From Tubulanus polymorphus (lineage: Eukaryota; Animalia; Nemertea), in contig NC_134032.1 of NCBI RefSeq assembly GCF_964204645.1, forward strand, positions 682,001 to 746,000: 64,000 nt of DNA, given 5' to 3'. The position numbers and the translations under genes are program-made. The notes under the pieces are model-generated. The model was not told the DNA's origin. It saw nothing but the letters and a program-made list of their open reading frames with translations, and ran no database searches. Shown here one piece after another: positions 1,359 through 52,833 of this stretch (positions within the stretch are counted from its first letter, which is position 1; the number at the start of each line of letters is the position of its first letter).

Positions 1359-3733
1359 CTAAATCGGGGGAGTTAATACAGTGTTTATATTGTAGAATCT
1401 CAGTGAGTTCTGATCATCACTGATATCACGGTGATGGATAACTACAGTGTCACTGTTACACACGTGATGTATGTCACATGTCTCACTGTCTGTAGAGTTC
1501 AGTATTATACGCGGGTGATCTATAAACCCCTCATCATTATATCTGATACTAATAACAGATCCTCTGTTACCAGTATTAGAGTATACCGATAGCAATACTT
1601 GATTATCATTAATGACACACGGGAATCCCATACATGGATCAAATGTCAGTCCGCAATCGTTCATAGTAATAAAACTGATCAATTCTGCTTCTGGTTTTAG
1701 ATACAATAATCTGCGTGTACGCAAACAGTAGATAAATATACGTCCCCGCGTGTCGACATCGAAACCGTAGATATAAAAGTAATCTCCATCCGGGAGCTGA
1801 TAGTTCTTCACTCGATTTCTATCGATCAATCTGTTTTCAGGGTTTTCTAATAAACGTAAAACATGAATTTCACTATCTCCTGTCTGTATAAAGATATTGT
1901 GATCACGGATTACGAAGGATCCACAGACTCCAGGCAGGAGATCAGTGATATTTTCTTCGAAGAGTTTTTTCTGATTTTTATATTTTCTCAGGATGTATTC
2001 CCTGTTTTTCCTCACGACCACAAACAGAAACCCGTTACCATCAGCAGCGAGTCCATGTATCCAACCATCAATCTCTATGTATCCCTGTATATTATCATCA
2101 TTCACACTATATATACAATTAGTGGAGCGATACTGCGCACATATAACACGTGACTGTTCACCCTCGTGTTCACCGGGTATTGACGTCACCATGTTGAGTA
2201 CGAAATCTGTATCTACCTGTTTATTGACCGTCAATGAATCGATTAATTCTACACGTAGCCGCGTGACGTCATCGATATATCCCTCCAGTTTATCAATTCT
2301 CCCTATGACGTCCTCAGTAGATCGCTCCGCTCTATCCATTCTCTCTATGACATCATCAACAGATCCCTCCACATTTCCAATTCTCTCTTTGACGTCATCA
2401 GTAGATCTTTCCACTTTATAATTTCTCCGTATGACGTCATCATTGATATTAGTCAGTTTTGTCTCCAATGCTTTAAGTTGCTGTTCAGTACAGCATTGAT
2501 TCAGCCTCTCTTCAAGTTGTTGTTCAGTACAGAACCGGTTCAGCCTCTCTTCAAGTTGTTGTTCAGTACAGAACCGGTTCTGCCTCTCTTCAAGTTGTTG
2601 TTCAGTACAGAACCGGTTCTGCCTCTCTTCAACTATTTCTATAGTGTGTTTCAATTGACAGAATTGATTTTCTAGATTATCGTGAAACTGTCTGACATGT
2701 TCTATAAAAGACCGATGTCGTTCATCAATGTCTGATCGAACTGTTCGGGTTTCACTGATCGACACACCTACTGAATTTACTTTATACAAATTATGTGCCT
2801 GATTTGAAGCGATCACATGAAGCCCCGACACTAATGAATGCGGGGCTTGTTGAAGATGTGTTTTTAAGTTCCGCGCTGTTTCGTCGTCTGAGCATTTAAC
2901 GATAAACACATGAATCGCTGGACAGTGATTAAACCCGATATGATGATTCGGTATCTCTACACCAGGGGGCGCTTCTCTCCATTCTAATTTCACCTGAAAT
3001 TGAAAAATATAGTTATATTAAGGGTGAAACTTAAGGGGGGGGGGGGGGTTGCTGATACAATTTCATCGGAACTTATTGCAGCTCGAGCGCTGTAGGCATG
3101 GACGGGCGAGGCGGAGGTCTAACCCCCAGAAAGTTTTTGGAATTTTGCTGCTTTTAAAAATTATTTCCTGCAATCTCGGAACAGTAACGGAACTCGGTTG
3201 GCTTCATGTCGTAGTAAATAAGATAAAAGATACGATCAGGGTGGAATTTTTCCGGGGGGAGAGGGGTGCACCAACTGCACCTGCCCCCCCCCCACCTACG
3301 GGCCTGAAATTGTTTGCTGTACGAGACTAGAATTGTTGGATTCTTGATATTCGTATTCTGCGAATCGGGGTCTGGGTTTGGTATATTATTCAACATTCAA
3401 GTAAAGAAATCAGACATATATATTTCTATCGGGTCCGAACGATGTATTGTTTACCTCGTCAAACGGCATCATTTGTACATTTATAACTTGTTCCGTATAG
3501 ATCGCTTTCAGTTTTACTTCGATAATAGTCTCTAATTCTTCTGTCCACATCTGTATCGGTAGTTGTAATTGATTACCAGCAGTAGCGATCAGATCACATT
3601 CTAAATCGAACAACGGTTGAAAGTAATAATTCTGTATTGTTCTGTAGTCGTTGTCGTGATCCGACCAAACACCGATCTTGCGACCACGATAAGAAACTGC
3701 GAGCTCGAATCTGTACGTAGAATTAGACGCCAT
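1359..3733 (-). CDS. Array gene copy 1: N-terminal alpha/beta domain + coiled-coil stalk (4 x 13-aa repeat) + NHL-like beta-propeller; exons 3733-3455 and 2993-1359 (~637 aa)
   Basis: Exon 1 ORF MASNSTY...PFDE ends at GAG|GTAAAC (3455/3454). The large ORF starts right after atttttcaatttcag|GTG (2994/2993). Both are phase 0, so they join in frame. The C-terminus has NHL-like blade motifs GLAADGNGFLFVV and GFDVDTRGRIFIY. Confidence 0.85.
2475..2630 (-). repeat. Coding 39-bp tandem repeat (EERLNRFCTEQQL) x4; 3-5 copies in the other paralogs (e.g. 15564-15758, x5)
   Basis: Exact 39-bp periodicity of aagttgttgttcagtacagaaccggttcagcctctcttc. Confidence 0.95.
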
Positions 3734-5680
3734 GTTGTTTTTGGGCGTTTTCTAACTGTAGATTGTGCAGGCGTGACCTCCTCACGCGCGCGGGTCTCAC
3801 GCGTCTTGCCATAAAGTTAAAACCACACGGCACTGATAACACGAAACAGCGATACAAATACAATACTCATCAAATGATGAATAGACATGCTTTGAGATCG
3901 CTTGTTCTGAACGGTGTCTCCTGGTGAGCAGGAGAACCTCTCTTCCAGTGTCGACGCGGTTCCTAACGTGATACCGGCAAGGCTACTGTGCGAAGCGAGG
4001 ATTCATTGATGATCCATAGGTGTCGCTAAGTGGTACGGGGTTTCCGCTATTCAATGTCCTCGCACATTTTTTTTATTCGAGTAGACTTTTACGATTATTA
4101 AATCAATTTTTAGTTAAATGAATACCATACCCTCCTGAACAAAATCTCAAGTAGAATACCCTGTAGTAAATTCGAGTCCGTTTGTCGTTTGGGCTGACTA
4201 TACCAGGAAATATATAGTGGACTTCGGAGCTTTCTCGGTAACTGATTGCTGTTAATGCTTGCTGTTGACTGAACTCACCTGACCAGTATATTTTAGATGT
4301 CACATATCCCAGGGACAATAACTGATTATAACTTATCCATGAGGCTTCTCTCGAGAATTGGCTGGTTAGACAAGTGAACCGATTAGGATACTTAGGTCGG
4401 GTTTAGGCTTTAAAACCGACACAGATTGGAACATCGTTACAGCAAACAGTACTCCGTATACCAAGTACGTTTTATCAAACGAGGTTAACGAAAATATAGA
4501 TATCTACTTATTTTATTATATTATTATTATCATTATTATTATTACGAGCTACAATTTTGCAATTGATTGGTGGTAACAATCTTCATTTTCTTAAATCAAT
4601 CATATCAATCCGGGTTTCTAATGTGATAAAGAAAAACCCATTAAAGCAGGTTTTTTGCGGCACGTTTTTTACTGCGAGGCCGCATGTTCGATGTACTTAA
4701 GGGTTAAACGAATATGATACCTTGTTTCTCCGCAGCGGCCGGGTCATTTTTGTAAAATATGATAAAATTTATAACCAGCACATTCCTATAGCTGCCGGGT
4801 CTGTTACGGGTAAGATCGATCACGATTTCAAAAAAAAAAGTAATGTACAGGGTAGATAGGCGGCCAGCCGGGTCAACTTTACAGCTCAGCGGGGCGGAGA
4901 AACAAAGTATACATTTCTAGCCTTAGTGAAAATATATTCTCTGTTGCGTCTTTTAATGTTAGTTTCATTAAAATCGATTGAAGTCAGTTTCGATACACTA
5001 GACCTGACCTAGTTGTCACTTAGTGGAAAAACTGGCGCGAATTTTTGGGCCGATCTTTCATCCTCGAGGGATCTATTAAAATAGTAAACATTTAAATCCC
5101 CCATAATCGATCTATCGCTCTTGAACTACTGTCGTTCTGATAAAGGACAGTTCCATAAAAAATTCACACTCGACCAAAATTGAGTCCAATTTAAACAATT
5201 TTCTCTAATTCAAGACGCTTAGGCGCTACATCCTAGCAGGCGCATAGCGCGCTTCGACAAAACGCAATCCGTGCATTTCGACTAAACTCTCTTTGAGACC
5301 GAACCGATATCGGATAACATAAAATTACAGGTCTGGTCTGGCGTTAGCGCAAGCGTCTGAAATTGGGCACCCTATATACCCTTAAAAATATGTATTTTAC
5401 TTTGAAAAATATAGATAAATAGCTGAAGCACTGAATCCGGTGAATATTGTGGGGTCTGATCCCTTAACGACCTCCCCTGACCCCCAGGGGTAAAAGTTTT
5501 GATAGTAGCAGGTTTTTTTTCTGAAAGCCCATCTCGTGTTACATGAACCCGAATTTGTTACCAATTTCTAACATTCGGCGCCTATAGAAGTATTTTTATG
5601 CGTTTTGCCGGCTGACTACGAGTAGCATTTCATTGTATACACGTCGTTCTCGAACCCTAGAATCGGTTTAGACTTCGGCT

Positions 5681-8050
5681 CTAAATCGGGGGAGTCAATA
5701 CAGTGTTTATATTGTAGAATCTCAGTGACTCCTGATCATCACTGATATCCCAGTGATGGATAACTACAGTGTTACTGTTTAACACGTGATGTATGTCACC
5801 TGTCCTACTGTCTGTAGAGTTCAGTATTATACGCGGGTGATCTATAAACCCCTCATCATTATATCTGATACTAATAACAGCACCTCTGTTAACATGTTGA
5901 CCACAGTATACCGATAGTAATACTTGATTATCATTAATGACACACGGGAATCCTGCATATGGACCAAATGTCAGTCCGCAATCGTTCATATAAATAAAAC
6001 TGATCAATTCTGCTTCTGGTGTTAGATACAATAATCTGTGTGTACGCAAACAGTAGATAAATATACGTCCCCGCGTGTCGAAATCGAAACTGTTGATAGA
6101 GTAAAATCCATCCGGGAGCTGATAGTTCTTCACTCGGCATCTATCAATCAATCTGTTTTCAGGGTTTTCTAATAAACGTAAAACATGAATTTCACTATCT
6201 CCTGTCTGTATAAAGATATTGTGATCACGGATTACGAAGGATCCACAGACTACAGACAGGAGATCAGTGATATTTTCTTCGAAGAGTTTTTCCATATTTT
6301 TATATTTTCTCAGGATGTATTCACTGTTTTTCCTCACGACCACAAACAGAAACCCGTTACCATCAGCAGCGAGTCCTTGTATCCAACCATCAATCTCTAT
6401 GTATCTCTGTATATTATCATCATTCACACTATATATATAACCAGTGGAGTTATGGCTCGCACATATAACACGTGACTGTTCACCCTCGTGTTCACCGGGT
6501 ATTGACGTCACCAGGCTGAGGAAGTCTGTATCTACCCGTTTATTGACCGTCAATGAATCGATTATTCCTACACGTAGCCGCGTGACGTCATCGATACATC
6601 CCTCCAGTTTATCAATTCTCCCTATGACGTCCTCAGTAGATCGTTCCGCTCTATCCATTCTCTCTATGACATCATCAACAGATCCCTCCACATTTCCAAT
6701 TCTCTCTTTGACGTCATCAGTAGATCTTTCCACTTTATAATTTCTCCGTATGACGTCATCATTTATATTAGTCAGTTTTGTCTCCAATGCTTTAAGTTGT
6801 TGTTCAGTACAGAACCGGTTCAGCCTCTCTTCAAGTTGTTGTTCAGTACAGAACCGGTTCTGCCTCTCTTCAAGTTGTTGTTCAGTACAGAACCGGTTCA
6901 GCCTCTCTTCAAGTTGTTGTTCAGTACAGAACCGGTTCAGCCTCTCTTCAACTGTTTCTATAGTGTGTTTCAATTGACAGAATTGATTTTCTAAATTATC
7001 GTGAAACTGTCTGACATGTTCTATAAAAGACCGATGTCGTTCATCAATGTCTGATCGAACTGTTCGGGTTTCACTGATCGACACACCTACTGAATTTACT
7101 TTATACAAATTATGTGCCTGATTTGAAGCGATCACATGAAGCCCCGACACTAATGAATGCGGGGCTTGTTGAAGATGTGTTTTTAAGTTCCGCGCTGTTT
7201 CGTCGTCTGAGCATTTAACGATAAACACATGAATCGCTGGACAGTGATTAAACCCGATATGATGATTCGGTATCTCTACACCAGGGGGCGCTTCTCTCCA
7301 TTCTAATTTCACCTGAAATTGAAAAATATAGTTATATTAAGGGTGAAACTTAAGGGGGGGGGGGGGTTGCTGATACAATTTCATCGGAACTTATTGCAGC
7401 TCGAGCGCTGTAGGCATGGACGGGCGAGGCGGAGGTCAAACCCCCAGAAAGTTTTTGGAATTTTGCTGCTTTTAAAAATTATTTCCTGCAATCTCGGAAC
7501 AGTAACGGAACTCGGTTGGCTTCATGTCGTAGTAAATAAGATAAAAGATACGATCAGGGTGGAATTTTTCCGGGGGGAGAGGGGTGCACCAACTGCACCT
7601 GCCCCCCCCCACCTACGGGCCTGAAATTGTTTGCTGTACGAGACTAGAATTGTTGGATTCTTGATATTCGTATTCTGCGAATCGGGGTCTGGGTTTGGTA
7701 TATTATTCAACATTCAAGTAAAGAAATCAGACATATATATTTCTATCGGGTCCGAACGATGTATTGTTTACCTCGTCAAACGGCATCATTTGTACATTTA
7801 TAACTTGTTCCGTATAGATCGCTTTCAGTTTTACTTCGATAATAGTCTCTAATTCTTCTGTCCACATCTGTATCGGTAGTTGTAATTGATCACCAGCAGT
7901 AGCGATCAGATCACATTCTAAATCGAACAACGGTTGAAAGTAATAATTCTGTATCGTTCTGTAGTCGTTGTCGTGATCCGACCAAACACCGATCTTGCGA
8001 CCACGATAAGAAACTGCGAGCTCGAATCTGTACGTAGAATTAGACGCCAT
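5681..8050 (-). CDS. Array gene copy 2; exons 8050-7772 and 7312-5681 (~636 aa; 4 x 13-aa repeat)
   Basis: Same splice signals as copy 1; intact ORFs. Confidence 0.85.
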
Positions 8051-9016
8051 GTTGTTTTTGGGCGTTTTCTTACTGTAGATTGTGCAGGCGTCACCTCCTC
8101 ACGCGCGCGGGTCTCACGCGTCTTGCCATAAAGTTAAAACCACACGGCACTGATAACACGAAACAGCGATACAAATACAATACTTATCAAATGATGAATA
8201 GACATGCTTTGAGATCGCTTGTTCTGAACGGTGTCTCCTGGTGAGCAGGAGAACCTCTCTTCCAGTGTCGACGCGGTTCCTAACGTGATACCGGCAAGGC
8301 TACTGTGCGAAGCGAGGATTCATTGATGATCCATAGGTGTCGCTAAGTGGTACGGGGTTTCCGCTATTCAATGTCCTCCCACATTTTTTTTATTCGAGTA
8401 GACTTTTCCGATTTTTAAATCAATTTTTAGTTAAATGAATACCATACCCTCCTGAACAAAATCTCAAGTAGAATACCCTGTAGTAAATTCGAGTCCGTTT
8501 GTCGTTTGGGCTGACTATACCAGGAAATATATAGTGGACTTCCGGAGCTTTCTCGGTAACTGATTGCTGTTAATGCTTGCTGTTGACTGAACTAACCTGA
8601 CCAGTTTATTTTAGATGTCACATATCCCAGGGACAATAACTGATTATAACTTATCCATGAAGCTTCTCTCGAGAATTGGCTGGTTAGACAAGTGAACCGA
8701 TTAGGATACTTAGGTCGGGTTTAGGCTTTAAAACCGACACAGATTGGAACATCGTTACAGCAAAGAGTACTCCGTATACCAAGTACGTTTTATCAAACTA
8801 GGTTAACGAAAATATAGATATCTACTTATTTTATTATATTATTATTATAATAATTATTACGAGCTACAATTTTGCAATTGATTGGTGGTAACAATCTTCA
8901 TTTTCTTAAATCAATCATATCAATCTGGGTTTCTAATGTGATAAAGAAAAACCCATTAAAGCAGGTTTTTTTGCGGCACGTTTTTTACTGCGAGGCCGCA
9001 TGTTCGATGTACTTAA

Positions 9017-9241
9017 GGGTTAAACGAATATGATACCTTGTTTCTCCGCACGGCCGGGTCATTTTTGTAAAATATGATAAAATTTATAACCAGCACATTC
9101 CTATAGCTGACGGGTCTGTTACGGGTAAGATCGATCACGATTTCAAAAGAAAAGTAATGTACAGGGTAGATAGGCGGCCAGCCGGGTCAACTTTACAGCT
9201 CAGCGGGGCGGAGAAACAAGGTATCAATTTTCTTTTTAGCC
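9017..9241. mobile_element. MITE (PIF/Harbinger-like) present in every array spacer; intact here
   Basis: Inner TIR TGATACCTTGTTTCTCCGC...GCGGAGAAACAAGGTATCA with GG...CC ends and TAA on both sides (9014-9016, 9242-9244). Dispersed relatives occur at 33542-33732, 38152-38372 and 48435-48646. Confidence 0.75.
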
Positions 9242-10079: not shown

Positions 10080-12484
10080 CTAAATCGGGGGAGTCAATAC
10101 AGTGTTTATATTGTAAAATCTCAATGAGTGCTGTAGGCCTATATTACTGTAATCCCAGTGTCGGATAACTACAGCGTTACTGTTTAACACGTGATGTATG
10201 TCACGTGTCACACTGTCTGTAGAGTTCAGTATTATACGCGGGTGATCTATAAACCCCTCATCATTATATCTGATACTAATAACAGCACCTCCGTTAACAC
10301 GGTGATCAGAGTATACCGATAGCAATACTTGATTATCATTAATGACACACGGGGATCCTGCATATGGACCAAATGTCAGTCCGCAATCGTGCATATAAAT
10401 AAAACTGATCAGTTCTGCTTCTGGTGTTAGATACAATAATCTGTGTGTATGCGAACAGTAGATAAATATACGTCCCCGCGTGTCCACATCGAAACTGTTG
10501 ATATACTTGTAATATCCACCCGGGAGCTGATAGTTCTTCACTCGGCATCTATCAATCAATCTGTTTACAGGGTTTTCTCGTAAAGGTAAAACATGAATGT
10601 CACTATCTCTATCTCCTGTCTGTATATAGATATTGTGATCACGGACCACTAAGGATCCACAGACTCTAGCCAGGAGATCAGTGATATTTTCTTCGAAGAG
10701 TTTTCTCTGATTTTTATATTTTCTCAGGATGTATTCACTGTTTTTCCACACGACCACAAACAGAAACCCGTTATTATCAGTATCGAGTCCTTGTATCCTA
10801 CCATCAATCTCTATGTATCTCTGTATATTATCATCATTCACACTATATATATAACCAGTGGAGTCATAGCGCGCACATATAACACGTGACTGTTCACCCT
10901 CGTGTTCACCAGGTAGTGACGTCACCAGGTGGGGTCTGAAATCTGTATCTACCCGTTTATTGACCGTCAATGAATCGATTATTCCTACACGTAGCCGCGT
11001 GACGTCATCGATAAATCCCTCCAGTTTATCAATTCTCCCTATGACGTCCTCAGTAGATCGTTCCGCTCTATCCATTCTCTCTATGACATCATCAACAGAT
11101 CCCTCCATATTTCCAATTCTCTCTTTGACGTCATCAGTAGATCTTTCCACTTTATAATTTCTCCGTATGAAGTCATCATTGATATTAGTCATTTTTGTCT
11201 CCAATGCTTTAAGTTGTTGTTCAGTACAGAACCGGTTCAGCCTTTCTTCAAGTTGTTGTTCAGTACAGCATTGGTTCAGCCTCTCTTCAAGTTGTTGTTC
11301 AGTACAGAACCGGTTCAGCCTCTCTTCAAGTTGTTGTTCAGTACAGAACCGGTTCAGCCTCTCTTCAACTGTTTCTATATTGTGTTTCAATTGACAGAAT
11401 TGATTTTCTAAATTATCGTGAAACTGTCTGACATGTTCTATAAAAGAACTATGTCGTTCATCAATGTCTGATCGAACTGTTCGGGTTTCACTGATCGGCA
11501 CACCTACTGAATTTACTTTATACAAATTATGTGCAGATGTCTGGTTTGAAGCGATCACATGAAGCCCCGACACTAATGAATGCGGGGCTTGTTGAAGATG
11601 TGTTTTTAAGTTTCGCGCTGTTTCATCGTCTGAGCATTTAACGATAAACACATGAATCGCCGGACAGTGATTAAACCCGATATGATGATTCGGTATCTCT
11701 ACACCAGGGGGCGCTTCTCTCCATTCTAGTTTCACCTGGAATTGAAAAATATAGTTATATTAAGGGTGAAACTTAAGGGGGGGTTGCTGATACAATTTCA
11801 TCGGAACTTATTGCAGCTCGAGCGCTGTAGGCATGATCGGGGAGGCGGAGGTTTAACCCCCAGAAAGTTTTTAGAATTTTGCTGCTTTTAAAAATGATTT
11901 CCTGCAATCTCGGAACAGTAACGGAACTCGGTTGGCTTCATGCCGTAGTAAATAAGACATAAGATACGATCAGGGTGGAATTTTTCCGGGGGGAGAGGGG
12001 TGCACCAACTGCACCTGTCCCCCCCCCCCCCACCTACGGTACTGAAATTGTTTGCTGTACGAGACTAGAATTGTTGGATTCTTGATATTCGTATTCTGCG
12101 AATCGGGGTCTGGGTTTGGTATATTATCAACTCTAAATTTTTATTCAACATTCAAGTAAAGAAATCAGACATATTTCTATCGGGTCCGAACGATGTATTG
12201 TTTACCTCGTCAAACGGCATCATTTGTACATTTATAACTTGTTCCGTATAGATCGATTTCAGTTCACATTTTATGTGGTTCTCTAATTCTTCTGTCCACA
12301 TCTGTATCGGTAGTTGTAATTGATCACCAGCAGTAGCGATCAGATCACATTCTAAATCGAACAACGGTTGAAAGTAATAATTCTGTATTGTTCTGTAGTC
12401 GTTGTCGTGATCCGACCAAACACCGATCTTGCGACCACGATAAGAAACTGCGAGCTCGAATCTGTACGTAGAATTAGACGCCAT
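10080..12484 (-). CDS. Array gene copy 3; exons 12484-12206 and 11735-10080 (~644 aa; 4 x 13-aa repeat)
   Basis: Donor GAG|GTAAAC and acceptor ttcaattccag|GTG conserved; intact ORFs. Confidence 0.85.
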
Positions 12485-14438: not shown

Positions 14439-16869
14439 CTAAATCGGGGGAGTCAATACAGTGTTTATATTGTAGAATCTCACTGAGTTCTGATCATCAC
14501 TGTTATCACGGTGATGGATAACTACAGTGTCACTGTCAAACACGTGATGTATGTCATATGTCACACTGTCTGTAGAGTTCAGTATTATACGCGGGTGATC
14601 TATAAACCCCTCATCATTATATCTGATACGGATAACAGCACCTCCGTTAACACGGTAATCAGAGTATACCGATAGCAATACTTGATTATCATTAATAACA
14701 CACGGGAATCCTGCATATGGAACAAATGTCAGTCCGCAATCGTTCATATAAATAAAACTGATCAATTCTGCTTCTGGTGTTAGATACAATAATCTGCGTG
14801 TACGCATACAGTAGATAAACATACGTCCCCGCGTGTCGACATCTAAACTGTCGATATTTAAGTAATCTCCATCCGGGAGCTGATATTTCTTCACTCGGCA
14901 TCTATCAATCAATCTGTTTACAGGGTTTTCTCGTAAAGGTAAAACATGAATGTCACTATCTCTATCTCCTGTCTGTATATAGATATTGTGATCACGGACC
15001 ACTAAGGATCCACAGACTCCAGGCGGGAGATCAGTGATATTTTCTTCGAAGAGTTTTTCCATATTTTTATATTTTCTCAGGATGTATTCACTGTTTTTCC
15101 ACACGACCACAAACAGAAACCCGTTATTATCAGTATCGAGTCCTTGTATCCTACCATCAATATCTATGTATCTCTGTATATTATCATCATTCACACTATA
15201 TATATAATCAGTCGAGCACCACTCCGCACATATAACACGTGACTGTTCACCCTCGTGTTCACCGGGTATTGACGTCATCAGGTGGGGTCTGAAATCTGTA
15301 TCTACCCGTTTATTGACCGTCAATGAATCGATTATTCCTACACGTAGCCGCGTGACGTCATCGATAAATCCCTCCAGTTTATCAATTCTCCCTATGACGT
15401 CCTCAGTAGATCGTTCCGCTCTATCCATTCTCTCTATGACATCATCAACAGATCCCTCCACATTTCCAATTCTCTCTTTGACGTCATCAGTAGATCTTTC
15501 CACTTTATATTTTCTCCGTATGAAGTCATCATTGATATTAGTCAGTTTTGTCTCCAATGCTTTAAGTTGTTGTTCAGTACAGAACCGGTTCAGCCTTTCT
15601 TCAAGTTGTTGTTCAGTACAGCATTGGTTCAGCCTCTCTTCAAGTTGTTGTTCAGTACAGAACCGGTTCAGCCTCTCTTCAAGTTGTTGTTCAGTGCAGA
15701 ACCGGTTCTGCCTCTCTTCAAGTTGTTGCTCAGTACAGAACCGGTTCAGCCTCTCTTCAACTGTTTCTATATTGTGTTTCAATTGACAGAATTGATTTTC
15801 TAAATTATCGTGAAACTGTCTGACATGTTCTATAAAAGAACTATGTCGTTCATCAATGTCTGATCGAACTGTTCGGGTTTCACTGATTGGCACACCTACT
15901 GAATTTACTTTATACAAATTATGTGCAGATGTCTGGTTTGAAGCGATCACATGAAGCCCCGACACTAATGAATGCGGGGCTTGTTGAAGATGTGTTTTTA
16001 AGTTTCGCGCTGTTTCATCGTCTGAGCATTTAACGATAAACACATGAATCGCTGGACAGTGATTAAACCCGATATGATGATTCGGTATCTCTACACCAGG
16101 GGGCGCTTCTCTCCATTCTAGTTTCACCTGGAATTGAAAAATATAGTTATATTAAGGGTGAAACTTAAGGGGGGGTTGCTGATACAATTTCATCGGAACT
16201 TATTGCAGCTCGAGCGCAGCATGATCGGGGAGGCGGAGGTTTAACCCCCAGAAAGTTTTTAGAATTTTGCTGCTTTTAAAAATGATTTCCTGCAATCTCG
16301 GAACAGTAACGGAACTCGGTTGGCTTCATGCCGTAGTAAATAAGACACAAGATACGATCAGGGTGGAATTTTTCCGGGGGGAGAGGGGTGCACCAACTGC
16401 ACCTGCCCCCCCCCCCACCTACGGTACTGAAATTGTTTGCTGTACGAGACTAGAATTGTTGGATTCTTGATATTCGTATTCTGCGAATCGGGGTCTGGGT
16501 TTGGTATATTATCAACTCTAAATTTTTATTCAACATTCAAGTAAAGAAATCAGACATATTTCTATCGGGTCCGAACGATGTATTGTTTACCTCGTCAAAC
16601 GGCATCATTTGTACATTTATAACTTGTTCCGTATAGATCGATTTCAGTTCACATTTTATGTGGTTCTCTAATTCTTCTGTCCACATCTGTATCGGTAGTT
16701 GTAATTGATCACCAGCAGTAGCGATCAGATCACATTCTAAATCGAACAACGGTTGAAAGTAATAATTCTGTATTGTTCTGTAGTCGTTGTCGTGATCCGA
16801 CCAAACACCGATCTTGCGACCACGATAAGAAACTGCGAGCTCGAATCTGTACGTAGAATTAGACGCCAT
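14439..16869 (-). CDS. Array gene copy 4; exons 16869-16591 and 16127-14439 (~655 aa; 5 x 13-aa repeat)
   Basis: Conserved splice signals; intact ORFs. Confidence 0.85.
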
Positions 16870-18900: not shown

Positions 18901-21245
18901 CTAAATCGGGGGAGTTAATACAGTGTTTATATTGTAGAATCTCAGTGAGTTCTGATCATCACTGTTATCACGGTGTCGGATAACTACAGTGTTACTATTT
19001 AACACGTGATGTATGCGATACGTCATACTGTCTGTAGAGTTCAGTATTATACGCGGGTGATCTATAAACCCCACATCATTATATCTGATACTGATAACAG
19101 CACCTCTGTTAACACTGTTATCAGAGTATACCGATAGCAATACTTGATTATCATTAATGACACACGGGGATCCTGCATATGGATCAAATGTCAGTCCGCA
19201 ATCGTGCATATAAATAAAACTGATCAGTTCTGCTTCTGCTGTTAGAAACAATAATCTGCGTGTACGCATACAGTAGATAAATATACGTCCCCGCGTGTCC
19301 ACATCGAAACTGTTGATATACTTGTAACCTCCACCCGGGAGCTGATATTTCTTCACTCGATTTCTATCAATCAATTTGTTTTCAGGATTTTCTCGTAAAC
19401 GTAAAACACGAATGACACTACCTGTCTGTATAAAGATATTGTGATCACGGACCACTAAGGATGCACAGACTCCAGACATGAGATCAGAGATATTTTCTTC
19501 GAAGAGTTTTCTCTGATTTTTATATTTTCTCAGGATGAATTCACTGTTTTTCCCCACGACCACAAACAGAAACCCGTTACTATCAGCAGCGAGTCCTTGT
19601 ATCCAACCATCAATCTCTATGTATCTCTGTATATTATCATCATTCACACTATATATATAATCAGTGGAGCCCCAGTCCGCACATATAACACGTGACTGTT
19701 CACCCTCGTGTTCACCGGGTATTGACGTCACCAGGCCGAGGAAGTCTGTATCTACCTGTTTATTGACCGTCAATGAATCGATTATTCCTACACGTAACCG
19801 CGTGACGTCATCGATACATCCCTCCAGTTTATCAATTCTCCCTATGACGTCCTCAGTAGATCGTTCCGCTCTATCCATTCTCTCTATGACATCATCAACA
19901 GATCCCTCCACATTTCCAATTCTCTCTTTGACGTCATCAGTAGATCTTTCCACTTTATAATTTCTCCGTATGACGTCATCATTGATATTAGTCAGTTTTG
20001 TCTCCAATGCTTTAAGTTGCTGTTCAGTACAGCATTGGTTCAGCCTCTCTTCAAGTTGTTGTTCAGTACAGAACCGGTTCAGCCTCTCTTCAAGTTGTTG
20101 TTCAGTACAGAACCGGTTCAGCCTCTCTTCAACTGTTTCTATATTGTGTTTCAATTGACAGAATTGATTTTCTAAATTATCGTGAAACTGTCTGACATGT
20201 TCTATAAAAGAACTATGTCGTTCATCAATGTCTGATCGAACTGTTCGGGTTTCACTGATCGGCACACCTACTGAATTTACTTTATACAAATTATGTGCAG
20301 ATGTCTGGTTTGAAGCGATCACATGAAGCCCCGACACTAATGAATGCGGGGCTTGTTGAAGATGTGTTTTTAAGTTTCGCGCTGTTTCATCGTCTGAGCA
20401 TTTAACGATAAACACATGAATCGCTGGACAGTGATTAAACCCGATATGATGATTCGGTATCTCTACACCAGGGGGCGCTTCTCTCCATTCTAGTTTCACC
20501 TGGAATTGAAAAATATAGTTATATTAAGGGTGAAACTTAAGGGGGGGTTGCTGATACAATTTCATCGGAACTTATTGCAGCTCGAGCGCTGTAGGCATGA
20601 TCGGGGAGGCGGAGGTTTAACCCCCAGAAAGTTTTTAGAATTTTGCTGCTTTTAAAAATGATTTCCTGCAATCTCGGAACAGTAACGGAACTCGGTTGGC
20701 TTCATGCCGTAGTAAATAAGACATAGATACGATCAGGGTGGAATTTTTCCGGGGGGAGAGGGGTGCACCAACTGCACCTGTCCCCCCCCCCCACCTACGG
20801 TACTGAAATTGTTTGCTGTACGAGACTAGAATTGTTGGATTCTTGATATTCGTATTCTGCGAATCGGGGTCTGGGTTTGGTATATTATCAACTCTAAATT
20901 TTTATTCAACATTCAAGTAAAGAAATCAGACATATTTCTATCGGGTCCGAACGATGTATTGTTTACCTCGTCAAACGGCATCATTTGTACATTTATAACT
21001 TGTTCCGTATAGATCGATTTCAGTTCACATTTTATGTGGTTCTCTAATTCTTCTGTCCACATCTGTATCGGTAGTTGTAATTGATCACCAGCAGTAGCGA
21101 TCAGATCACATTCTAAATCGAACAACGGTTGAAAGTAATAATTCTGTATTGTTCTGTAGTCGTTGTCGTGATCCGACCAAACACCGATCTTGCGACCACG
21201 ATAAGAAACTGCGAGCTCGAATCTGTACGTAGAATTAGACGCCAT
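18901..21245 (-). CDS. Array gene copy 5; exons 21245-20967 and 20499-18901 (~625 aa; 3 x 13-aa repeat)
   Basis: Conserved splice signals; intact ORFs. Confidence 0.85.
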
Positions 21246-23279
21246 GTTGTTTTTGGGCGTTTTCTAACTGTAGATTGTGCAGGCGTGACCTCCTCACGCG
21301 CGCGGGTCTCACGCGTCTTGCCATAAAGTTAAAACCACACGGCACTGATAACACGAAACAGCGATACAAATACAATACTTATCAAATGATGAATAGACAT
21401 GCTTTGAGATCGCTTGTTCTGAACGGTGTCTCCTGGTGAGCAGGAGAACCTCTCTTCCAGTGTCGACGCGGTTCCTAACGTGATACCGGCAAGGCTACTG
21501 TGCGAAGCGAGGATTCATTGATGATCCATAGGTGTCGCTAAGTGGTACGGGGTTTCCGCTATTCAATGTCCTCGCACATTTTTTTTATTCGAGTAGACTT
21601 TTCCGATTATTAAAATCAATTTTTAGTTAAATGAATACCATACCCTCCTGAACAAAATCTCAAGTAGAATACCCTGTAATAAATTCGAGTCCGATTGTCG
21701 TTTGGGCTGACTATACCAGGAAATATATAGTGGACTTCCGGAGCTTTCTCGGTAACTGATTGCTGTTTATGCTCGCTGTTGACTGAACTCACCTGACCAG
21801 TTTATTTTAGATGTCACATATCCCAGGGACAATAACTGATTATAACTTATCCATGAGACTTCTCTCGAGAATTGGCTGCTTAGACAAGTGAACCGATTAG
21901 GATACTTAGGTCGGGTTTAGGCTTTAAAACCGACACAGATTGGAACATCGTTACAGCAAACAGTACTCCGTATACCAAGTACGTTTTATCAAACGAGGTT
22001 AACGAAAATATAGATATCTACTTATTTTATTATATTATTATTATCATTATTATTATTACGAGCTACAATTTTGCAATTGATTGGTGGTAACAATCTTCAT
22101 TTTCTTAAATCAATCATATCAATCCGGGTTTCTAATGTGATAAAGAAAAACCCATTGAAGCAGGTTTTTGCGGCACGTTTTTTACTGCGAGGCCGCATGT
22201 TCGATGTACTTAAGGGTTAAACGAATATGATACCTTGTTTCTCCGCACGGCCGGGTCATTTTTGAAAAATATGATAAAATTTATAACCAGCACATTCCTA
22301 TAGCTGACGGGTCTGTTACGGGTAAGATCGATCACGATTTCAAAAGAAAAGTAATGTACAGGGTAGATAGGCGGCCAGCAGGGTCAACTTTACAGCTCAG
22401 CGGGGCGGAGAAACAAGGTATCAATTTTCTTTTTAGCCTAACTTCAAATATTTTTTACAATTCTAGTTTATTTATAATTTCAATAAAGAATCATCTGACA
22501 AAGGTATACATTTCTAGCCTTAGTGAAAATATATTCTCTTCTGCGTCTTTTAATGTTAGTTTCATTAAAATCGATTGAAGTCAGTTTCGATACACTAGAC
22601 CTGACCTAGTTGTCACTTAGTGGAAAAACTGGCGCGAATTTTAGGGCCGATTTTTCATCCTCGAGGGATCTATTAAAATAATAAACATTTAAATCCCCCA
22701 TAATCGATCTATCGCTCTAGAACTACTGTCGTTCTAATAAAGGACAGTTCCATAAAAAATTCACACTCGACCAAAATTGAGTCCAATTTAAACAATTTTC
22801 TCTAATTCAAGACGCTTAGGCGCTACATCCTAGCAGGCGCATAGCGCGCTTCGACAAAACGCAATCCGTGCATTTCGACTAAACTCTCTTTGAGACTGAA
22901 CCGATATCGGATAACATAAAATTACAGGTCTGGTCTGGCGTTAGCGCAAGCGTCTGAAATTGGGCACCCTATATACCCTTCAAAATATGTATTTTACTTT
23001 GAAAAATATAGATAAATAGCTGAAGCACTGAATCCGGTGAATATTGTGGGGTCTGATCCCTTAACGACCTCCCCTGACCCCCAGGGGTAAAAGTTTTGAT
23101 AGTAACAGGTTTTTTTTCTGAAAGCCCATCTCGTGTTACATGAACCCGAGTTTGTTACCAATTTCTAACATTCGGCGCCTATAGAAGTATTTTATGATGC
23201 GTTTTGCCGGCGGACTACGAGTAGCATTTCATTGTATACACGTCGTTCTCGAACTCTAGAATCGGTTTAGACTTCGGCT

Positions 23280-25610
23280 CTAAATCGGGGGAGTTAATAC
23301 AGTGTTTATATTGTAGAATCTCAGTGACTTCTGATCATCACTGTTATCCCAGTGTCGGATAGCTACAGTGTTACTGTTTAACACGTGATGTATGTCACAT
23401 GTCACACAGTCTGTAGAGTTCAGTATTATACGCGGGTGATCTATAAACCCCTGATTATTATATCTGATACTGATAACAGCACCTCTGTTAACACAGGGAT
23501 CAGAGCATACCGATAGTAATATACGATCATCATTAATAACACACGGGTGTCCTGCACATGGATTAAATTCTAGTGCACAATCGTTCATATTGATAAAACT
23601 AATCTCGTTCGCATCTGCTGTTAGAAACAGTAATCTATGAGTCGTTTCACAGTAAAGAAACATCCGTCCCTTTGAATCGACATCGAAACAGTTGATATTA
23701 CCGTAACCTCCATCCGGGAGCTGATATTTCTTCACTCGATTTCTATTTATCAAACTGTTAACAGGGTTTTCTAATAAACGTAAAACATGAACGTCTCTTC
23801 CTAACTGTATATAGATATTGTAATCACGGATCACTAAGGATACACAGACTCCAGGCAGGAGATCATTGATATTTTCTTCAAACAGTTTTTGCTTATCTTT
23901 ATATTTTCTCAGGATGAATTTCCTATTTTTTTTTACGAGCGCAAACAGATCCCCGTTACTATCAGTAGCGAGTCCTTTTACACCACCGCCATCAATCTTT
24001 ATGTATCTATCAAATTCATCATCATCATAATCATAATCATCGTCATCATTCATGCAATATATATAATTAGTGGCGCTGAACTCGGCACATATAACACGTG
24101 ACTGTTCACCCGCATGTTCACCAGGTAGTGACGTCATCAGGTCGGGTGTGAAGTCTGTATCTATCAGTTTACTGATCATCAATGGCGCGCATTCTACACG
24201 TAGCCGCGTGACGTCATCAATATGTATCTCTAATTCATCAATTCTCCTTTTGACATCATCAGTAATTTTGGATAGTTTTGCCCCCATATCATCATTGATA
24301 TTGGTCAGTTTTTCCTCAAGTTGTTGTTCAGTACAGCACCGGTTCAGCCTGATCTCTTCAAGTTGCTGTTCAGTACAGAACCGGTTCAGCCTCTCTTCAA
24401 GTTGTTGCTCAGTGCAGAACCGGTTCAGCCTCTCTTCAAGTTGCTGTTCAGTACAGAACCGGTTCAGCCTCTCTTCAAGTTGTTGTTCAGTGCAGCACCG
24501 GTTCAGCTTCTCTTCAACTGTTTCTATATTGTGTTTCAATTGACAGAATTGATTTTCTAGATTATCGTGAAACTGTCTGACATGTTCTATAAAAGAACTA
24601 TGTCGTTCATCAATGTCTGATCGAACTGTTCGGGTTTCACTGATCGACACACCTACTGAATTTACTTTATACAAATTATGTGCAGATGCCTGGTTTGAAG
24701 CGATCACATGAAGCCCCGACACTAATGAATGCGGGGCTTGTTGAAGATGTGTTTTTAAGTTTTGCGCTGTTTCATCGTCTGAGCATTTAACGATAAACAC
24801 ATGAATCGCTGGACAGTGATTAAACCCGATATGATGATTCGGTATCTCTACACCAGGGGGCGCTTCTCTCCATTCTAGTTTCACCTGGAATTGAAAAATA
24901 TAGTTATATTAAGGGTGAAACTTAAGGGGGGGGTGCTGATACAATTTTCATCTGATTTATTGCAGCTCGAGCGCTGTAGGCATGATCGGGGAGGCGGAGG
25001 TTTAACCCCCAGAAAGTTTTTAGAATTTTGCTGCTTTTAAAAATGATTTCCTGCAATCTCGGAACAGTAACGGAACTCGGTTGGCTTCATGCCGTAGTAA
25101 ATAAGACATAAGATACGATCAGGGTGGAATTTTTCCGGGGGGAGAGGGGTGCACCAACTGCACCTGCCCCCCCCCCACCTACGGAACTGAAATTGTTTGC
25201 TGTACGAGACTAGAATTGTTGGATTCTTGATATTCGTATTCTGCGAATCGGTCTGGGTTTGGTATATTATTCAACATTCAAGTAAAGAAATCAGACATAT
25301 TTCTATCGGGTCCGAACGATGTATTGTTTACCTCGTCAAACGGCATCATTTGTACATTTATAACTTGTTCCGTATAGATCGCTTTCAGTTTTACTTCGAT
25401 AATAGTCTCTAATTCTTCTGTCCACATCTGTATCGGTAGTTGTAATTGATTACCAGCAGTAGCGATCAGATCACATTCTAAATCGAACAACGGTTGAAAG
25501 TAATAATTCTGTATTGTTCTGTAGTCGTTGTCGTGATCCGACCAAACACCGATCTTGCGACCACGATAAGAAACTGCGAGCTCGAATCTGTACGTAGAAT
25601 TAGACGCCAT
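23280..25610 (-). CDS. Array gene copy 6 (most divergent; shortened stalk, acidic loop insertion); exons 25610-25332 and 24884-23280 (~627 aa; 5 x 13-aa repeat)
   Basis: Conserved splice signals; ORF intact despite many substitutions and in-frame indels. Confidence 0.85.
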
Positions 25611-27641
25611 GTTGTTTTTGGGCGTTTTCTAACTGTAGATTGTGCAGGCGTGACCTCCTCACGCGCGCGGGTCTCACGCGTCTTGCCATAAAGTTAAAAC
25701 CACACGGCACTGATAACACGAAACAGCGATACAAATACAATACTCATCAAATGATGAATAGACATGCTTTGAGATCGCTTGTTCTGAACGGTGTCTCCTG
25801 GTGAGCAGGAGAACCTCTCTTCCAGTGTCGACGCGGTTCCTAACGTGATACCGGCAAGGCTACTGTGCGAAGCGAGGATTCATTGATGATCCATAGGTGT
25901 CGCTAAGTGGTACGGGGTTTCCGCTATTCAATGTCCTCCCACATTTTTTTTATTCGAGTAGACTTTTACGATTATTAAATCAATTTTTAGTTAAATGAAT
26001 ACCATACCCTCCTGAACAAAATCTCAAGTAGAATACCCTGTAGTAAATTCGAGTCCGTTTGTCGTTTGGGCTGACTATACCAGGAAATATATAGTGGACT
26101 TCGGAGCTTTCTCGGTAACTGATTGCTGTTAATGCTTGCTGTTGACTGAACTAACCTGACCAGTTTATTTTAGATGTCACATATCCCAGGGACAATAACT
26201 GATTATAACTTATCCATGAAGCTTCTCTCGAGAATTGGCTGGTTAGACAAGTGAACCGATTAGGATACTTAGGTCGGGTTTAGGCTTTAAAACCGACACA
26301 GATTGGAACATCGTTACAGCAAACAGTACTCCGTATACCAAGTACGTTTTATCAAACGAGGTTAACGAAAATATAGATATCTACTTATTTTATTATATTA
26401 TTATTATAATAATTATTACGAGCTACAATTTTGCAATTGATTGGTGGTAACAATCTTCATTTTCTTAAATCAATCATATCAATCCGGGTTTCTAATGTGA
26501 TAAAGAAAAACCCATAAAAGCAGGTTTTTGCGGCACGTTTTTTACTGCGAGGCCGCATGTTCGATGTACTTAAGGGTTAAACGAATATGATACCTTGTTT
26601 CTCCGCAGCGGCCGGGTCATTTTTGTAAAATATGATAAAATTTATAACCAGCACATTCCTATAGCTGACGGGTCTGTTACGGGTAAGATCGATCACGATT
26701 TCAAAAGAAAAGTAATGTACAGGGTAGATAGGCGGCCAGCCGGGTCAACTTTACAGCTCAGCGGGGCGGAGAAACAAGGTATCAATTTTCTTTTTAGCCT
26801 AACTTCAAATATTTTTTACAATTCTAGTTTATTTATAATTTCAATAAAGAATCATCTGACAAAGGTATACATTTCTAGCCTTAGTGAAAATATATTCTCT
26901 TCTGCGTCTTTTAATGTTAGTTTCATTAAAATCGATTGAAGTCAGTTTCGATACACTAGACCTGACCTAGTTGTCACTTAGTGGAAAAACTGGCGCGAAT
27001 TTTTGGGCCGATCTTTCATCCTCGAGGGATCTATTAAAATAGTAAACATTTAAATCCCCCATAATCGATCTATCGCTCTTGAACTACTGTCGTTCTGATA
27101 AAGGACAGTTCCATAAAAAATTCACACTCGACCAAAATTGAGTCCAATTTAAACAATTTTCTCTAATTCAAGACGCTTAGGCGCTACATCCTAGCAGGCG
27201 CATAGCGCGCTTCGACAAAACGCAATCCGTGCATTTCGACTAAACTCTCTTTGAGACTGAACCGATATCGGATAACATAAAATTACAGGTCTGGTCTGGC
27301 GTTAGCGCAAGCGTCTGAAATTGGGCACCCTATATACCCTTCAAAATATGTATTTTACTTTGAAAAATATAGATAAAAAGCTGAAGCACTGAATCCAGTG
27401 AATATTGTGGGGTCTGATCCCTTAACGACCTCCCCTGACCCCCAGGGGTAAAAGTTTTGATAGTAGCAGGTTTTTTTTCCTGAAAGCCCATCTCGTGTTA
27501 CATGAACCCGAATTTGTTACCAATTTCTAACATTCCGCGCCTATAGAAGTATTTTATGATGCGTTTTGCCGGCGGACTACGAGTAGCATTTCATTGTATA
27601 CACGTCGTTCTGGAACCCTAGAATCGGTTTAGAATTCGGCT

Positions 27642-30070
27642 CTAAATCGGGGGAGTTAATACAGTGTTTATATTGTAGAATCTCAGTGAGTTCTGATCAT
27701 CACTGTTATCCCAGTGACGGATAGCTACAGTGTTACTGTTTAACACGTGATGTATGTCACATGTCACACTGTCTGTAGAGTTCAGTATTATACGCGGGTG
27801 ATCTATAAACCCCACATCATTATATCTGATACGGATAACAGCACCTCTGTTAACACGGTAATCAGAGCATACCGATAGCAATACTTGATTATCATTAATA
27901 ACACACGGGAATCCTGCATATGGAACAAATGTCAGTCCGCAATCGTTCATATAAATAAAACTGATCAATTCTGCTTCTGGTTTTAGATACAATAATCTGC
28001 GTGTACGCAAACAGTAGATAAATATACGTCCCCGCGTGTCGAAATCGAAACTGTTGATAGAGTAAAATCCATCCGGGAGCTGATATTTCTTCACTCGGCA
28101 TCTATCAATCAATCTGTTTTCAGGGTTTTCTAATAAACGTAAAACATGAATTTCACTATCTCCTGTCTGTATAAAGATATTGTGATCACGGATTACGAAG
28201 GATCCACAGACTACAGACAGGAGATCAGTGATATTTTCTTCGAAGAGTTTTTCCATATTTTTATATTTTCTCAGGATGTATTCACTGTTTTTCCTCACGA
28301 CCACAAACAGAAACCCGTTACCATCAGCAGCGAGTCCATGTATCCAACCATCAATCTCTATGTATCTCTGTATATTATCATCATTCACACTATATATATA
28401 ACCAGTGGAGTTATGGCTCGCACATATAACACGTGACTGTTCACCCTCGTGTTCACCGGGTATTGACGTCATCAGGTGGGGTCTGAAATCTGTATCTACC
28501 CGTTTATTGACCGTCAATGAATCGATTATTCCTACACGTAGCCGCGTGACGTCATCGATAAATCCCTCCAGTTTATCAATTCTCCCTATGACGTCCTCAG
28601 TAGATCGTTCCGCTCTATCCATTCTCTCTATGACATCATCAACAGATCCCTCCACATTTCCAATTCTCTCTTTGACGTCATCAGTAGATCTTTCCACTTT
28701 ATAATTTCTCCGTATGAAGTCATCATTGATATTAGTCATTTTTGTCTCCAATGCTTTAAGTTGTTGTTCAGTACAGAACCGGTTCAGCCTTTCTTCAAGT
28801 TGTTGTTCAGTACAGCATTGGTTCAGCCTCTCTTCAAGTTGTTGTTCAGTACAGAACCGGTTCAGCCTCTCTTCAAGTTGTTGTTCAGTGCAGAACCGGT
28901 TCTGCCTCTCTTCAAGTTGTTGCTCAGTACAGAACCGGTTCAGCCTCTCTTCAACTGTTTCTATATTGTGTTTCAATTGACAGAATTGATTTTCTAAATT
29001 ATCGTGAAACTGTCTGACATGTTCTATAAAAGAACTATGTCGTTCATCAATGTCTGATCGAACTGTTCGGGTTTCACTGATTGGCACACCTACTGAATTT
29101 ACTTTATACAAATTATGTGCAGATGTCTTGTTTGAAGCGATCACATGAAGCCCCGACACTAATGAATGCGGGGCTTGTTGAAGATGTGTTTTTAAGTTTC
29201 GCGCTGTTTCATCGTCTGAGCATTTAACGATAAACACATGAATCGCTGGACAGTGATTAAACCCGATATGATGATTCGGTATCTCTACACCAGGGGGCGC
29301 TTCTCTCCATTCTAGTTTCACCTGGAATTGAAAAATATAGTTATATTAAGGGTGAAACTTAAGGGGGGGTTGCTGATACAATTTCATCGGAACTTATTGC
29401 AGCTCGAGCGCAGCATGATCGGGGAGGCGGAGGTTTAACCCCCAGAAAGTTTTTAGAATTTTGCTGCTTTTAAAAATGATTTCCTGCAATCTCGGAACAG
29501 TAACGGAACTCGGTTGGCTTCATGCCGTAGTAAATAAGACACAAGATACGATCAGGGTGGAATTTTTCCGGGGGGAGAGGGGTGCACCAACTGCACCTGC
29601 CCCCCCCCCCCCCCCCCACCTACGGTACTGAAATTGTTTGCTGTACGAGACTAGAATTGTTGGATTCTTGATATTCGTATTCTGCGAATCGGGGTCTGGG
29701 TTTGGTATATTATCAACTCTAAATTTTTATTCAACATTCAAGTAAAGAAATCAGACATATTTCTATCGGGTCCGAACGATGTATTGTTTACCTCGTCAAA
29801 CGGCATCATTTGTACATTTATAACTTGTTCCGTATAGATCGATTTCAGTTCACATTTTATGTGGTTCTCTAATTCTTCTGTCCACATCTGTATCGGTAGT
29901 TGTAATTGATCACCAGCAGTAGCGATCAGATCACATTCTAAATCGAACAACGGTTGAAAGTAATAATTCTGTATTGTTCTGTAGTCGTTGTCGTGATCCG
30001 ACCAAACACCGATCTTGCGACCACGATAAGAAACTGCGAGCTCGAATCTGTACGTAGAGTTAGATGCCAT
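27642..30070 (-). CDS. Array gene copy 7 (terminal copy); exons 30070-29792 and 29321-27642 (~652 aa; 5 x 13-aa repeat)
   Basis: ATG of MASNSTY at 30070; conserved splice signals; intact ORFs. Confidence 0.85.
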
Positions 30071-51825: not shown

Positions 51826-52384
51826 TATATCTGCAACGAAAAATATATATATATATATATGTAACGATTGCGAGACAGTGAAAATTACGCACGCGCTCAC
51901 CGGGGATCGGGGTAATGAAGAAGTAAAAATGGACCGCAAGGGGCATCGAGTATAAATAAAAAATGGGATTGAATATAGCTAAAAACTCCTAGTAGACGCT
52001 TAGTTGAATTTTAATTATTTTTGGGGCCGAAGTTGGCGCAAAAAACGTGAAACTTGGACTTAAAAATGGAGGTCGTCTGCATCCTCTGGTGTCGCTCACT
52101 GACCAGGGATTGAACCTGGGTCTCGTACGTAGAAAACAAATGTGTAATCCAGTAGACAAATAGAACTAGTCCATGTACTACGTCTATACAGCTTGTAGCG
52201 TAACATATGAAAGATCACTTTTTTACCAAATAAATGTTTACTTTGGGTCCTAAGTTACACAATATGTTGACGTATTAACTACTCTAAACCCTAACCCTTT
52301 AGCACGATATCTTTTTACTATATATACATATTTATTTCTCTTTAAACATTTATTTGGATAAAGTTCCACAGCAAACAAGATCTC

Positions 52385-52785: not shown

Positions 52786-52833
52786 ATTACAATGCTATCC
52801 CATTATCACTAGGGCTTGTGTGGCCAGTTTGTT

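Follow-up and report, generated by a model that had tools for sequence, protein, structure and literature searches.

What kind of gene family holds most of its sequence constant from one tandem copy to the next, while a single domain is left to diverge, is the question raised by a locus of the nemertean Tubulanus polymorphus. The locus lies in a 64,000-nucleotide stretch of contig NC_134032.1 (the window; C8:682001-746000 of the 268 Mb assembly, with window position 1 at C8:682001), where two-exon genes are repeated in units of about 4.35 kb, each specifying a conserved N-terminal domain (the head), a helical stalk and a predicted C-terminal beta-propeller. From copy to copy the spacers and the head are nearly identical, and the propellers are diverged, mosaic and, in the loops of one predicted face, positively selected. 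The array probably encodes cytosolic recognition proteins, of a family restricted to this lineage and diversified in the germline, a reading for which the propeller fold, a ratio of nonsynonymous to synonymous divergence (dN/dS, omega) above 1 on one face, and the lack of transmembrane segments and RING domains all speak. The original prediction, made from the window alone, had reached a similar view of cytosolic recognition, and missed the sister genes in which the same propeller is fused to a caspase.

Seven open reading frames of 532-562 amino acids (aa) lie on the minus strand of the window at a spacing of 4.32-4.46 kb, each making up the second of a gene's two exons. Every copy also has an intact exon 1 of 93 codons beginning at an ATG, a GTAAAC donor, a polypyrimidine tract with a CAG acceptor, and a phase 0 intron of 447-470 bp. 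The claim of seven intact paralogs without frameshift or premature stop is confirmed on all these counts, and holds equally for the copies beyond the window; what had been underestimated is the extent of the array, which runs on leftward through three more copies to a total of ten (C8:670322-712070), all with about 630 codons open and none with a stop or frameshift. The copies are here named c1-c10, such that window copies 1-7 are c4-c10 and c1-c3 lie to the left of the window; each unit carries one gene, and no second gene alternates along the array. Exon 2 of copy 1 is 100% identical over 100% of its length to P0001 (637 aa; NCBI "uncharacterized protein LOC141909850"), in which exon 1 supplies residues 1-93 and exon 2 residues 94-637. 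This database model, with the same splice junction as read from copy 1, was the spliced protein used for folding. Splicing of the array genes is a prediction from conserved signals only: the signals are canonical in all copies, and paralogs down to about 33% identity keep a conserved peptide across the junction of exons 1 and 2. Candidate joints at 3005/3006->3420/3450 were set aside as splice evidence, as they miss the splice sites at 2994/3454 and have sides of 26-30 nt. The features of the array within the window are the following.

1359..3733, minus strand: copy 1 (c4), whole gene, corresponding to LOC141909850 and P0001, 637 aa
3455..3733, minus strand: copy 1 exon 1, first half of the conserved N-domain; 93 codons, GTAAAC donor; 0-5.4% divergence among copies, in two haplogroups
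2994..3454, minus strand: copy 1 intron, 461 bp, phase 0, GT..AG, junction shared with P0001
2769..2993, minus strand: copy 1 exon 2, second half of the N-domain (P0001 residues 94-168); predicted local distance difference test (pLDDT) 72-93; dN/dS 0.16
2253..2768, minus strand: copy 1 disordered linker and helical stalk (residues 169-340); helices predicted over 183-338, pLDDT 44-69
2471-2632 and 2264-2442, minus strand: copy 1 stalk repeats of 39 bp (13 aa) and 84 bp (28 aa), respectively, from a tandem-repeat scan
1362..2252, minus strand: copy 1 predicted six-bladed NHL-like beta-propeller (residues 341-637), with the stop codon at 1359-1361
3734..5680, minus strand: spacer between copies 2 and 1, comprising the 3' flank of copy 2 and the promoter region of copy 1; 0.4-2.4% pairwise divergence among units c1-c9
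5681..8050, minus strand: copy 2 (c5), whole gene
10080..12484, minus strand: copy 3 (c6), whole gene
14439..16869, minus strand: copy 4 (c7), whole gene
18901..21245, minus strand: copy 5 (c8), whole gene
23280..25610, minus strand: copy 6 (c9), whole gene; with c3 a divergent lineage, which lacks 28 aa of the stalk and whose propeller differs from the others by 16-19%
27642..30070, minus strand: copy 7 (c10), whole gene and final unit; the common upstream spacer stops about 100-170 bp above the ATG

The promoter region of copy 7 is 19-22% diverged and the sequence further upstream is unrelated to that of the other units, which places an edge of the array there. Directly upstream of the same copy lies a relatively GC-rich 43-bp tandem repeat (window 30228-30885; 15.3 copies, 96% matches), which may mark the array boundary.

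Divergence is distributed very unevenly along the unit, as measured pairwise at the nucleotide level in an iterative global alignment of the ten units. The spacers differ by 0.4-2.4%, the part of the head encoded by exon 2 by 0-2.6%, exon 1 by 0-5.4% and the intron by 0-7.5%; the stalk reaches 0-20%, and the 0.9 kb of propeller coding sequence 3.4-19%. In 50-nt windows the divergent block begins in the stalk repeats and ends at the stop codon, where divergence drops from 6-15% to 1-3%. The expectation of near-identical constant parts therefore stands for the spacers and the N-domain, and is weakened for the introns, which are less uniform than the spacers. Likewise, the C-terminal domain differs among all seven window copies, as had been claimed for every copy, but c4 (window copy 1) has the same propeller as c2, which lies beyond the window. 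The word "hypervariable" was an overstatement, since the exon-2 proteins are 77-91% identical to that of copy 1 and strong variation is consequently confined to about 20-60 positions. An apparent spacer divergence of 12-15% in a fast MAFFT alignment proved to be an artefact and was overturned by the iterative global alignment. Synonymous divergence (dS) in the propeller is 0.03-0.27, or 2-18 times the divergence of the spacers (about 0.015), so that the propeller DNA must be older than its flanks. This speaks against a simple recent amplification, and implies instead that the backbone has been homogenised with the propeller sequence either excluded or re-imported.

The propellers are, moreover, mosaics. 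The 126 informative sites of the nine propeller sequences imply a minimum of 34 recombination events (Rm 34), and adjacent sites show less incompatibility than in any of 1,000 random permutations of site order (a test of the pairwise homoplasy index, PHI, type; p<0.001). Scanned in 90-nt windows, each copy changes its nearest relative again and again, about every 90 nt, and the propeller of copy 7 (c10) is a patchwork of segments matching c1, c5, c4, c7 and c9 at 97-100%. Some of the closest matches of such windows lie outside the array altogether, with c7 matching C8:214771 at 100%, c8 matching C8:2265649 at 99% and c1 matching C8:214771 at 98%. Consistent with this, the array propellers are not monophyletic in a maximum-likelihood tree: c3/c9 and c1 fall outside clades whose members include dispersed C8 copies, among them the caspase-linked C8:929665 (P0011) and C8:3083282 (P0015), and C8:214771 and C8:223560 nest within the close group of array copies (c2/4, 5, 6, 7, 8 and 10). 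The locus at C8:214-224 kb has the exons and about 60 bp of 3' flank in common with the array and lacks its spacers, which points to exchange or common ancestry of a coding cassette and not to segmental duplication. The 61-63 bp directly 3' of the stop codon (window 5618-5680 and equivalents) are 100% identical between the array and C8:214-224 kb, next to propeller coding sequence that is 91-94% identical; this short segment could be a conserved element of the 3' untranslated region or the boundary of a conversion tract.

What the diverging domain is was addressed with an AlphaFold2 model of P0001, built on a 56-row alignment of family members (mean pLDDT 77; from the single sequence pLDDT was only 33, and that model was not used). 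Residues 10-165 form a mixed alpha/beta head (pLDDT about 72-93), residues 169-193 are disordered, residues 183-338 are helical at low confidence (44-69), and residues 341-634 are modelled at 86-95 with exactly 24 strands. TRIM-NHL domains rank first for this model in both Foldseek and VIA-align (Brat at E 1.8e-8, TMt 0.69), slightly above other six-bladed propellers, and the nearest neighbours of the propeller in ESM features are NHL clusters (0.94). Sequence profiles are silent by comparison, with no match to head or propeller in Pfam, NCBIfam or the PDB profiles: Pfam NHL (PF01436) gave nothing at E<=0.1 in the 7 window copies or 20 paralogs, the PDB profile search returned no NHL chain at E<=1, and the sole Pfam match to the propeller is a sub-threshold one to the SBBP propeller repeat (15.8-20.4 bits). 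The C-terminal domain is, on the strength of the model, a six-bladed NHL-like propeller by structure and not by sequence profile. Kyte-Doolittle hydropathy, averaged over 19 residues, peaks at 1.0, and the proteins accordingly lack a signal peptide and a transmembrane segment; Pfam found no RING or B-box and, in the window copies, no caspase domain, and a NACHT/NB-ARC NTPase is absent from every family member scanned, including open reading frames of 932-2230 aa. In all of this the original prediction was borne out: it had proposed an NHL-like propeller from motifs, had noted no signal peptide, transmembrane segment or RING/B-box pattern, and had not recognised the architecture, which likewise matches no named family, for the head or as a whole, in our searches.

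The head and stalk are less readily placed. The head, of about 165 aa, is under purifying selection (dN/dS 0.16, Nei-Gojobori), and its invariant residues, among them H116 and C127 as its only invariant His and Cys, persist down to 36% identity. It gave nothing consistent against Pfam or PDB profiles (E<=10) or NCBIfam and no usable match in an ESM-feature search, and word-indexed searches found it in T. polymorphus only; an exhaustive search covered its exon-2 half along with the stalk and propeller. The head, an orphan as judged by sequence, may be a novel effector or signalling domain. A PADLOC match to Cas6b, an RNA endonuclease, was obtained in the head of 8 of 12 members at E 1e-3 (16.7 bits), and was retained as no more than a weak lead, being uncorroborated by the PDB profile and genome-level searches. 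The stalk, of about 150 aa, is helical and made of 13-aa and 28-aa repeats whose number differs by copy, the 39-bp repeat occurring 3.2-5.2 times per gene. In paralogs in which the Cys-containing 13-aa repeat is expanded (P0005, P0019; L048:3055-5853, minus strand), Pfam Galaxin_repeat matches above threshold at up to 93.9 bits, and in the window copies, with 3-5 repeats, it does not match. This may reflect a common origin with the di-Cys repeats found in secreted galaxins, or else an artefact of periodicity, and it tempers the reading of the stalk as a coiled coil.

Given these likenesses, the array proteins might be post-transcriptional regulators of TRIM-NHL type, in which the top face of the propeller binds RNA, the array keeps pace with fast-evolving RNAs of the animal itself (those of transposons, for example, or germline mRNAs) and not with pathogens, and the head acts on the bound RNA. 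The propellers of Brat, Mei-P26 and Lin41 do bind RNA with their top face, the closest structures are all RNA-binding TRIM-NHL proteins, including RNA-bound Brat (4zlr), the order of putative coiled coil and then NHL is that of the TRIM-NHL proteins, and the weak Cas6b match would suit such a role. The predicted helical-stalk-then-propeller order does mimic that of TRIM-NHL proteins such as Brat, Mei-P26, NHL-2 and TRIM2/3/32/71/Lin41. Even so, the array proteins have an orphan alpha/beta domain of about 165 aa in place of the RING and B-box, they have no Pfam NHL match and only 9-12% sequence identity to TRIM-NHL proteins, and TRIM-NHL genes are conserved and mostly single-copy where these form a positively selected, multi-copy array. 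In the absence of RING, B-box and NHL profile match the family is not a member of TRIM-NHL, and we regard RNA regulation as unlikely to be its function.

The reading as diversified recognition proteins draws instead on where in the propeller selection has acted. Codons were partitioned by predicted secondary structure and not by variability, and dN/dS was obtained by pairwise Nei-Gojobori estimates with codon bootstrap, not from a likelihood site model. Because propeller loops alternate between faces, all B-C and D-A loops must lie on one face, whatever the strand register. For the whole propeller, dN/dS is 1.1-2.7 within the close group and 0.63-0.90 against the deep lineages c1 and c3/c9. 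Partitioned, the values are as follows.

C8 close group: one-face loops (B-C, D-A) 2.67 (bootstrap confidence interval 1.52-7.12), strands 1.07, opposite-face loops 1.04
C12 array: one-face loops 1.62 (interval including 1), strands 0.90, opposite-face loops 0.43
Dispersed C8 copies: one-face loops 2.10, strands 1.43, opposite-face loops 0.84
C8 array against C12 array: one-face loops 1.39 (interval including 1), strands 0.39, opposite-face loops 0.50

In a previous run of this partition the one-face loops came to 2.86. Rather than the even spread at or below 1 that had been named beforehand as speaking against the prediction, the one-face loops stand at 2.67 with an interval above 1. Variability points the same way: sites with at least four residues among the nine distinct copies make up 12/63 in the one-face loops and 9/231 elsewhere (Fisher p 2e-4), and 6 of the latter 9 are strand ends abutting one-face loops. 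In the modelled structure, the variable face formed by the B-C and D-A loops, in which most of the variation falls, is the predicted top face, and it is under positive selection.

More broadly, the array is one part of a large family. A six-frame genome search returned 90 matches and about 45 full-length propellers on at least 9 contigs, most of these propellers without stops. Paralogs down to 30-36% identity keep the head-stalk-propeller order (P0023, P0024), and P0029 consists of head and stalk only. A second tandem array at C12:2.00-2.06 Mb has eight copies with the same exon structure, and again the 5' part is less diverged (1-3%) than the propeller (4-8%). Between the C12 units stand three identical-looking copies of a 344-aa open reading frame (L034-L036; C12:2007099, 2020515 and 2033801), which could be a gene amplified along with the array or else a mobile element.

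The same propeller also occurs in a second architecture. P0010, P0011, P0015 and P0020 have an N-terminal propeller followed by Peptidase_C14 (E 3e-67 to 6e-57), and they keep the SHG motif of the catalytic His and the QACRG motif of the catalytic Cys. Residues 1-375 of P0010, comprising the propeller and the first 56 or so caspase residues, are encoded on one uninterrupted exon, as are the equivalents in P0011 and P0015, so that the fusion is not an artefact of annotation. P0020 is a 50%-identical version of the fusion on a different chromosome, and the caspase-linked propellers are about 75% identical to those of the array. The dispersed propeller-caspase genes, in which the other caspase exons lie 1.4-4 kb downstream, are these.

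L041:1485-2609, at C8:3.716 Mb: propeller-caspase gene
L042:6362-7558, minus strand, at C8:0.929 Mb: propeller-caspase gene
L045:1267-2394, at C8:3.083 Mb: propeller-caspase gene

Pfam recognised no further fusion partner, that is, no other known domain, in the 932-2230-aa open reading frames of the family. Two open frames contain two propellers each and no other recognisable domain: L049:2553-5738 on the plus strand (1061 aa; C8:759553-762738, 13.5 kb to the right of the window) and L046:2351-9043 on the minus strand (2230 aa). That the same propeller is fused to catalytically intact caspases gives the family a stronger link to cell death or immunity.

The backbone of spacers, promoter and head is kept near-identical, presumably by unequal crossing-over or gene conversion, and the propeller region retains old, diverged sequence, reshuffled in patches of about 90-200 bp among the approximately 45 cassettes of the genome, some of them at other loci. 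If the family is one of recognition proteins, its workings may be pictured as follows. The variable face would bind a fast-evolving ligand, most likely a protein or RNA derived from a pathogen; RNA is plausible, since the propellers nearest in structure hold RNA with their top face. Clustering driven by ligand would, by way of the stalk, gather the heads and produce an output, and in the sister genes the propeller-fused caspase would be activated by induced proximity and the cell killed. A bolder version, which we hold only tentatively, is that nemerteans possess an intracellular immunity independent of NLRs, with a shared propeller sensor distributed among some 45 patch-converted cassettes and wired either to the orphan head through an oligomerising stalk or to a caspase. 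Ligand-triggered, adaptor-free cell death of this kind would be a one-protein analogue of the inflammasome.

Several observations weigh against recognition as the function. An immune role is suggested by two things, analogy and the caspase fusion. As to expression, three runs from one study, their kind unrecorded (X1-X3), have contigs that span intron, spacer and exons alike, so they are DNA and not RNA, and the one possible RNA run has no match at the locus. Oligomerisation, which the mechanism would need, received a stalk homodimer prediction score of 0.03, a value that carries no weight either way. The whole-model fold searches (Foldseek against PDB, VIA wide PDB, BFVD and ESM Atlas) were filled by propeller matches and left the fold of the head unread. 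All database homologs come from T. polymorphus, a single species. Finally, the strands and opposite-face loops of the close group also have omega near 1, which indicates that relaxed constraint contributes to the recent divergence, and the one-face intervals within the C12 array and between the two arrays are those that include 1.

A fast-evolving family need not serve defence, and the diversification could be driven by intraspecific conflict, either as conspecific recognition (of gametes, or of self and non-self) or as a selfish toxin-antidote element. The signature seen here, of one-face omega above 1, mosaic conversion and copy-number flux, also marks allorecognition, for example in the WD-propeller HNWD genes of fungi (PMC2873952), and the confinement of the family to one species in current databases would fit. 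Without a signal peptide or transmembrane segment, recognition at the cell surface is unlikely, and the single gene per unit leaves no partner that might alternate with it as toxin or antidote. To our knowledge Tubulanus is, in addition, neither colonial nor fusing, which counts against such conflict, and we think this account decidedly improbable. Least credible of all is that the array is a recent segmental duplication drifting under relaxed constraint, with the contrast between spacer and propeller a by-product of conversion-tract positions and no diversified function behind it, for although the near-neutral strands and opposite-face loops of the close group, the lack of support for expression in the runs examined and the two copies still identical in the propeller are what drift would give, some 630 codons stay open in all ten copies although these differ by up to 19% at the nucleotide level, most of the approximately 45 propellers are stop-free, omega exceeds 1 significantly on only a single face, defined by structure, with the variable sites clustered there, purifying selection is clear at greater depth (strands 0.39, head 0.16), and the divergent block ends at the stop codon.

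Read as a family of diversified recognition proteins, the array has its closest analogue in logic, though by analogy only, in finTRIM and TRIM5. FinTRIMs have near-identical N-terminal regions and a positively selected B30.2 domain that has been shuffled with NLRs (PMC2657112), and with TRIM5alpha they share with the array the plan of a clustered multigene family whose N-terminal part is almost constant and whose variable C-terminal sensor has selected surface loops (PMC2657112). In both cases the sensor has also moved to a second architecture, B30.2 onto NLRs in finTRIM and the propeller onto caspases here. The two are unrelated in sequence, the sensor being B30.2/SPRY there and an NHL-like propeller here, and the head there a RING/B-box E3 ligase; finTRIMs are, furthermore, induced by virus, whereas the array genes are known here from DNA alone. 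What appears to be new, if the analogy is sound, is the realisation of a constant head and diversified sensor with an NHL-like propeller, the pattern itself being known from finTRIM and TRIM5.

The closest diversified propeller coupled to cell death is that of the Podospora anserina HNWD genes (het-d/e/r), in which a beta-propeller is likewise the specificity domain (PMC2873952). There, WD40 repeats are diversified by shuffling of repeat units and joined to a NACHT NTPase and a HET effector, whereas here diversity arises by patch conversion between whole propellers and not by changes in repeat number, and the lack of any NTPase means that the family is not an NLR. The sister genes resemble initiator caspases with CARD or DED prodomains in joining a non-catalytic domain to a caspase with SHG and QACRG motifs, and the analogy suggests activation by induced proximity. 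With a propeller in place of the death-fold prodomain, sensing would be direct and adaptor-free. The window genes themselves differ from initiator caspases in having no caspase domain.

Transformer (185/333) of sea urchins, the FREPs of snails and Alr of Hydractinia, to which the array had originally been likened, are secreted or membrane proteins of unrelated folds. The likeness stands as an evolutionary pattern, that of a clustered, rapidly diversifying and mosaic invertebrate family, and fails for sequence, fold and location: the array proteins have no signal peptide or transmembrane segment, and the searches found no sequence link to these families. We know of described diversified recognition families from very few invertebrate phyla beyond arthropods, molluscs, echinoderms and cnidarians, and of none from Nemertea. 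The compact 4.35-kb units allow homogenisation of the backbone and diversification of the sensor to be separated base by base. An NHL-type propeller would here serve as a positively selected sensor, whereas elsewhere NHL domains are familiar chiefly as conserved modules for RNA binding. The natural fusion of sensor and caspase also makes the proposed output testable. Should the immune reading prove wrong, the locus would still be a good model of concerted evolution from which one segment of an exon is selectively excluded.

Beyond the array, the window contains a 109-bp satellite at 35963-37210 (11.4 copies, 97% matches) and a 39-bp repeat that occurs in both orientations 15 kb apart, at 37439-37739 and 52382-52786. 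Exons of a BTB-BACK-Kelch (KLHL-like) gene lie on the minus strand at 39041-41023 (BTB E 2e-30, BACK E 3e-28, Kelch E 3e-6), an ordinary neighbour with no relation to the array.

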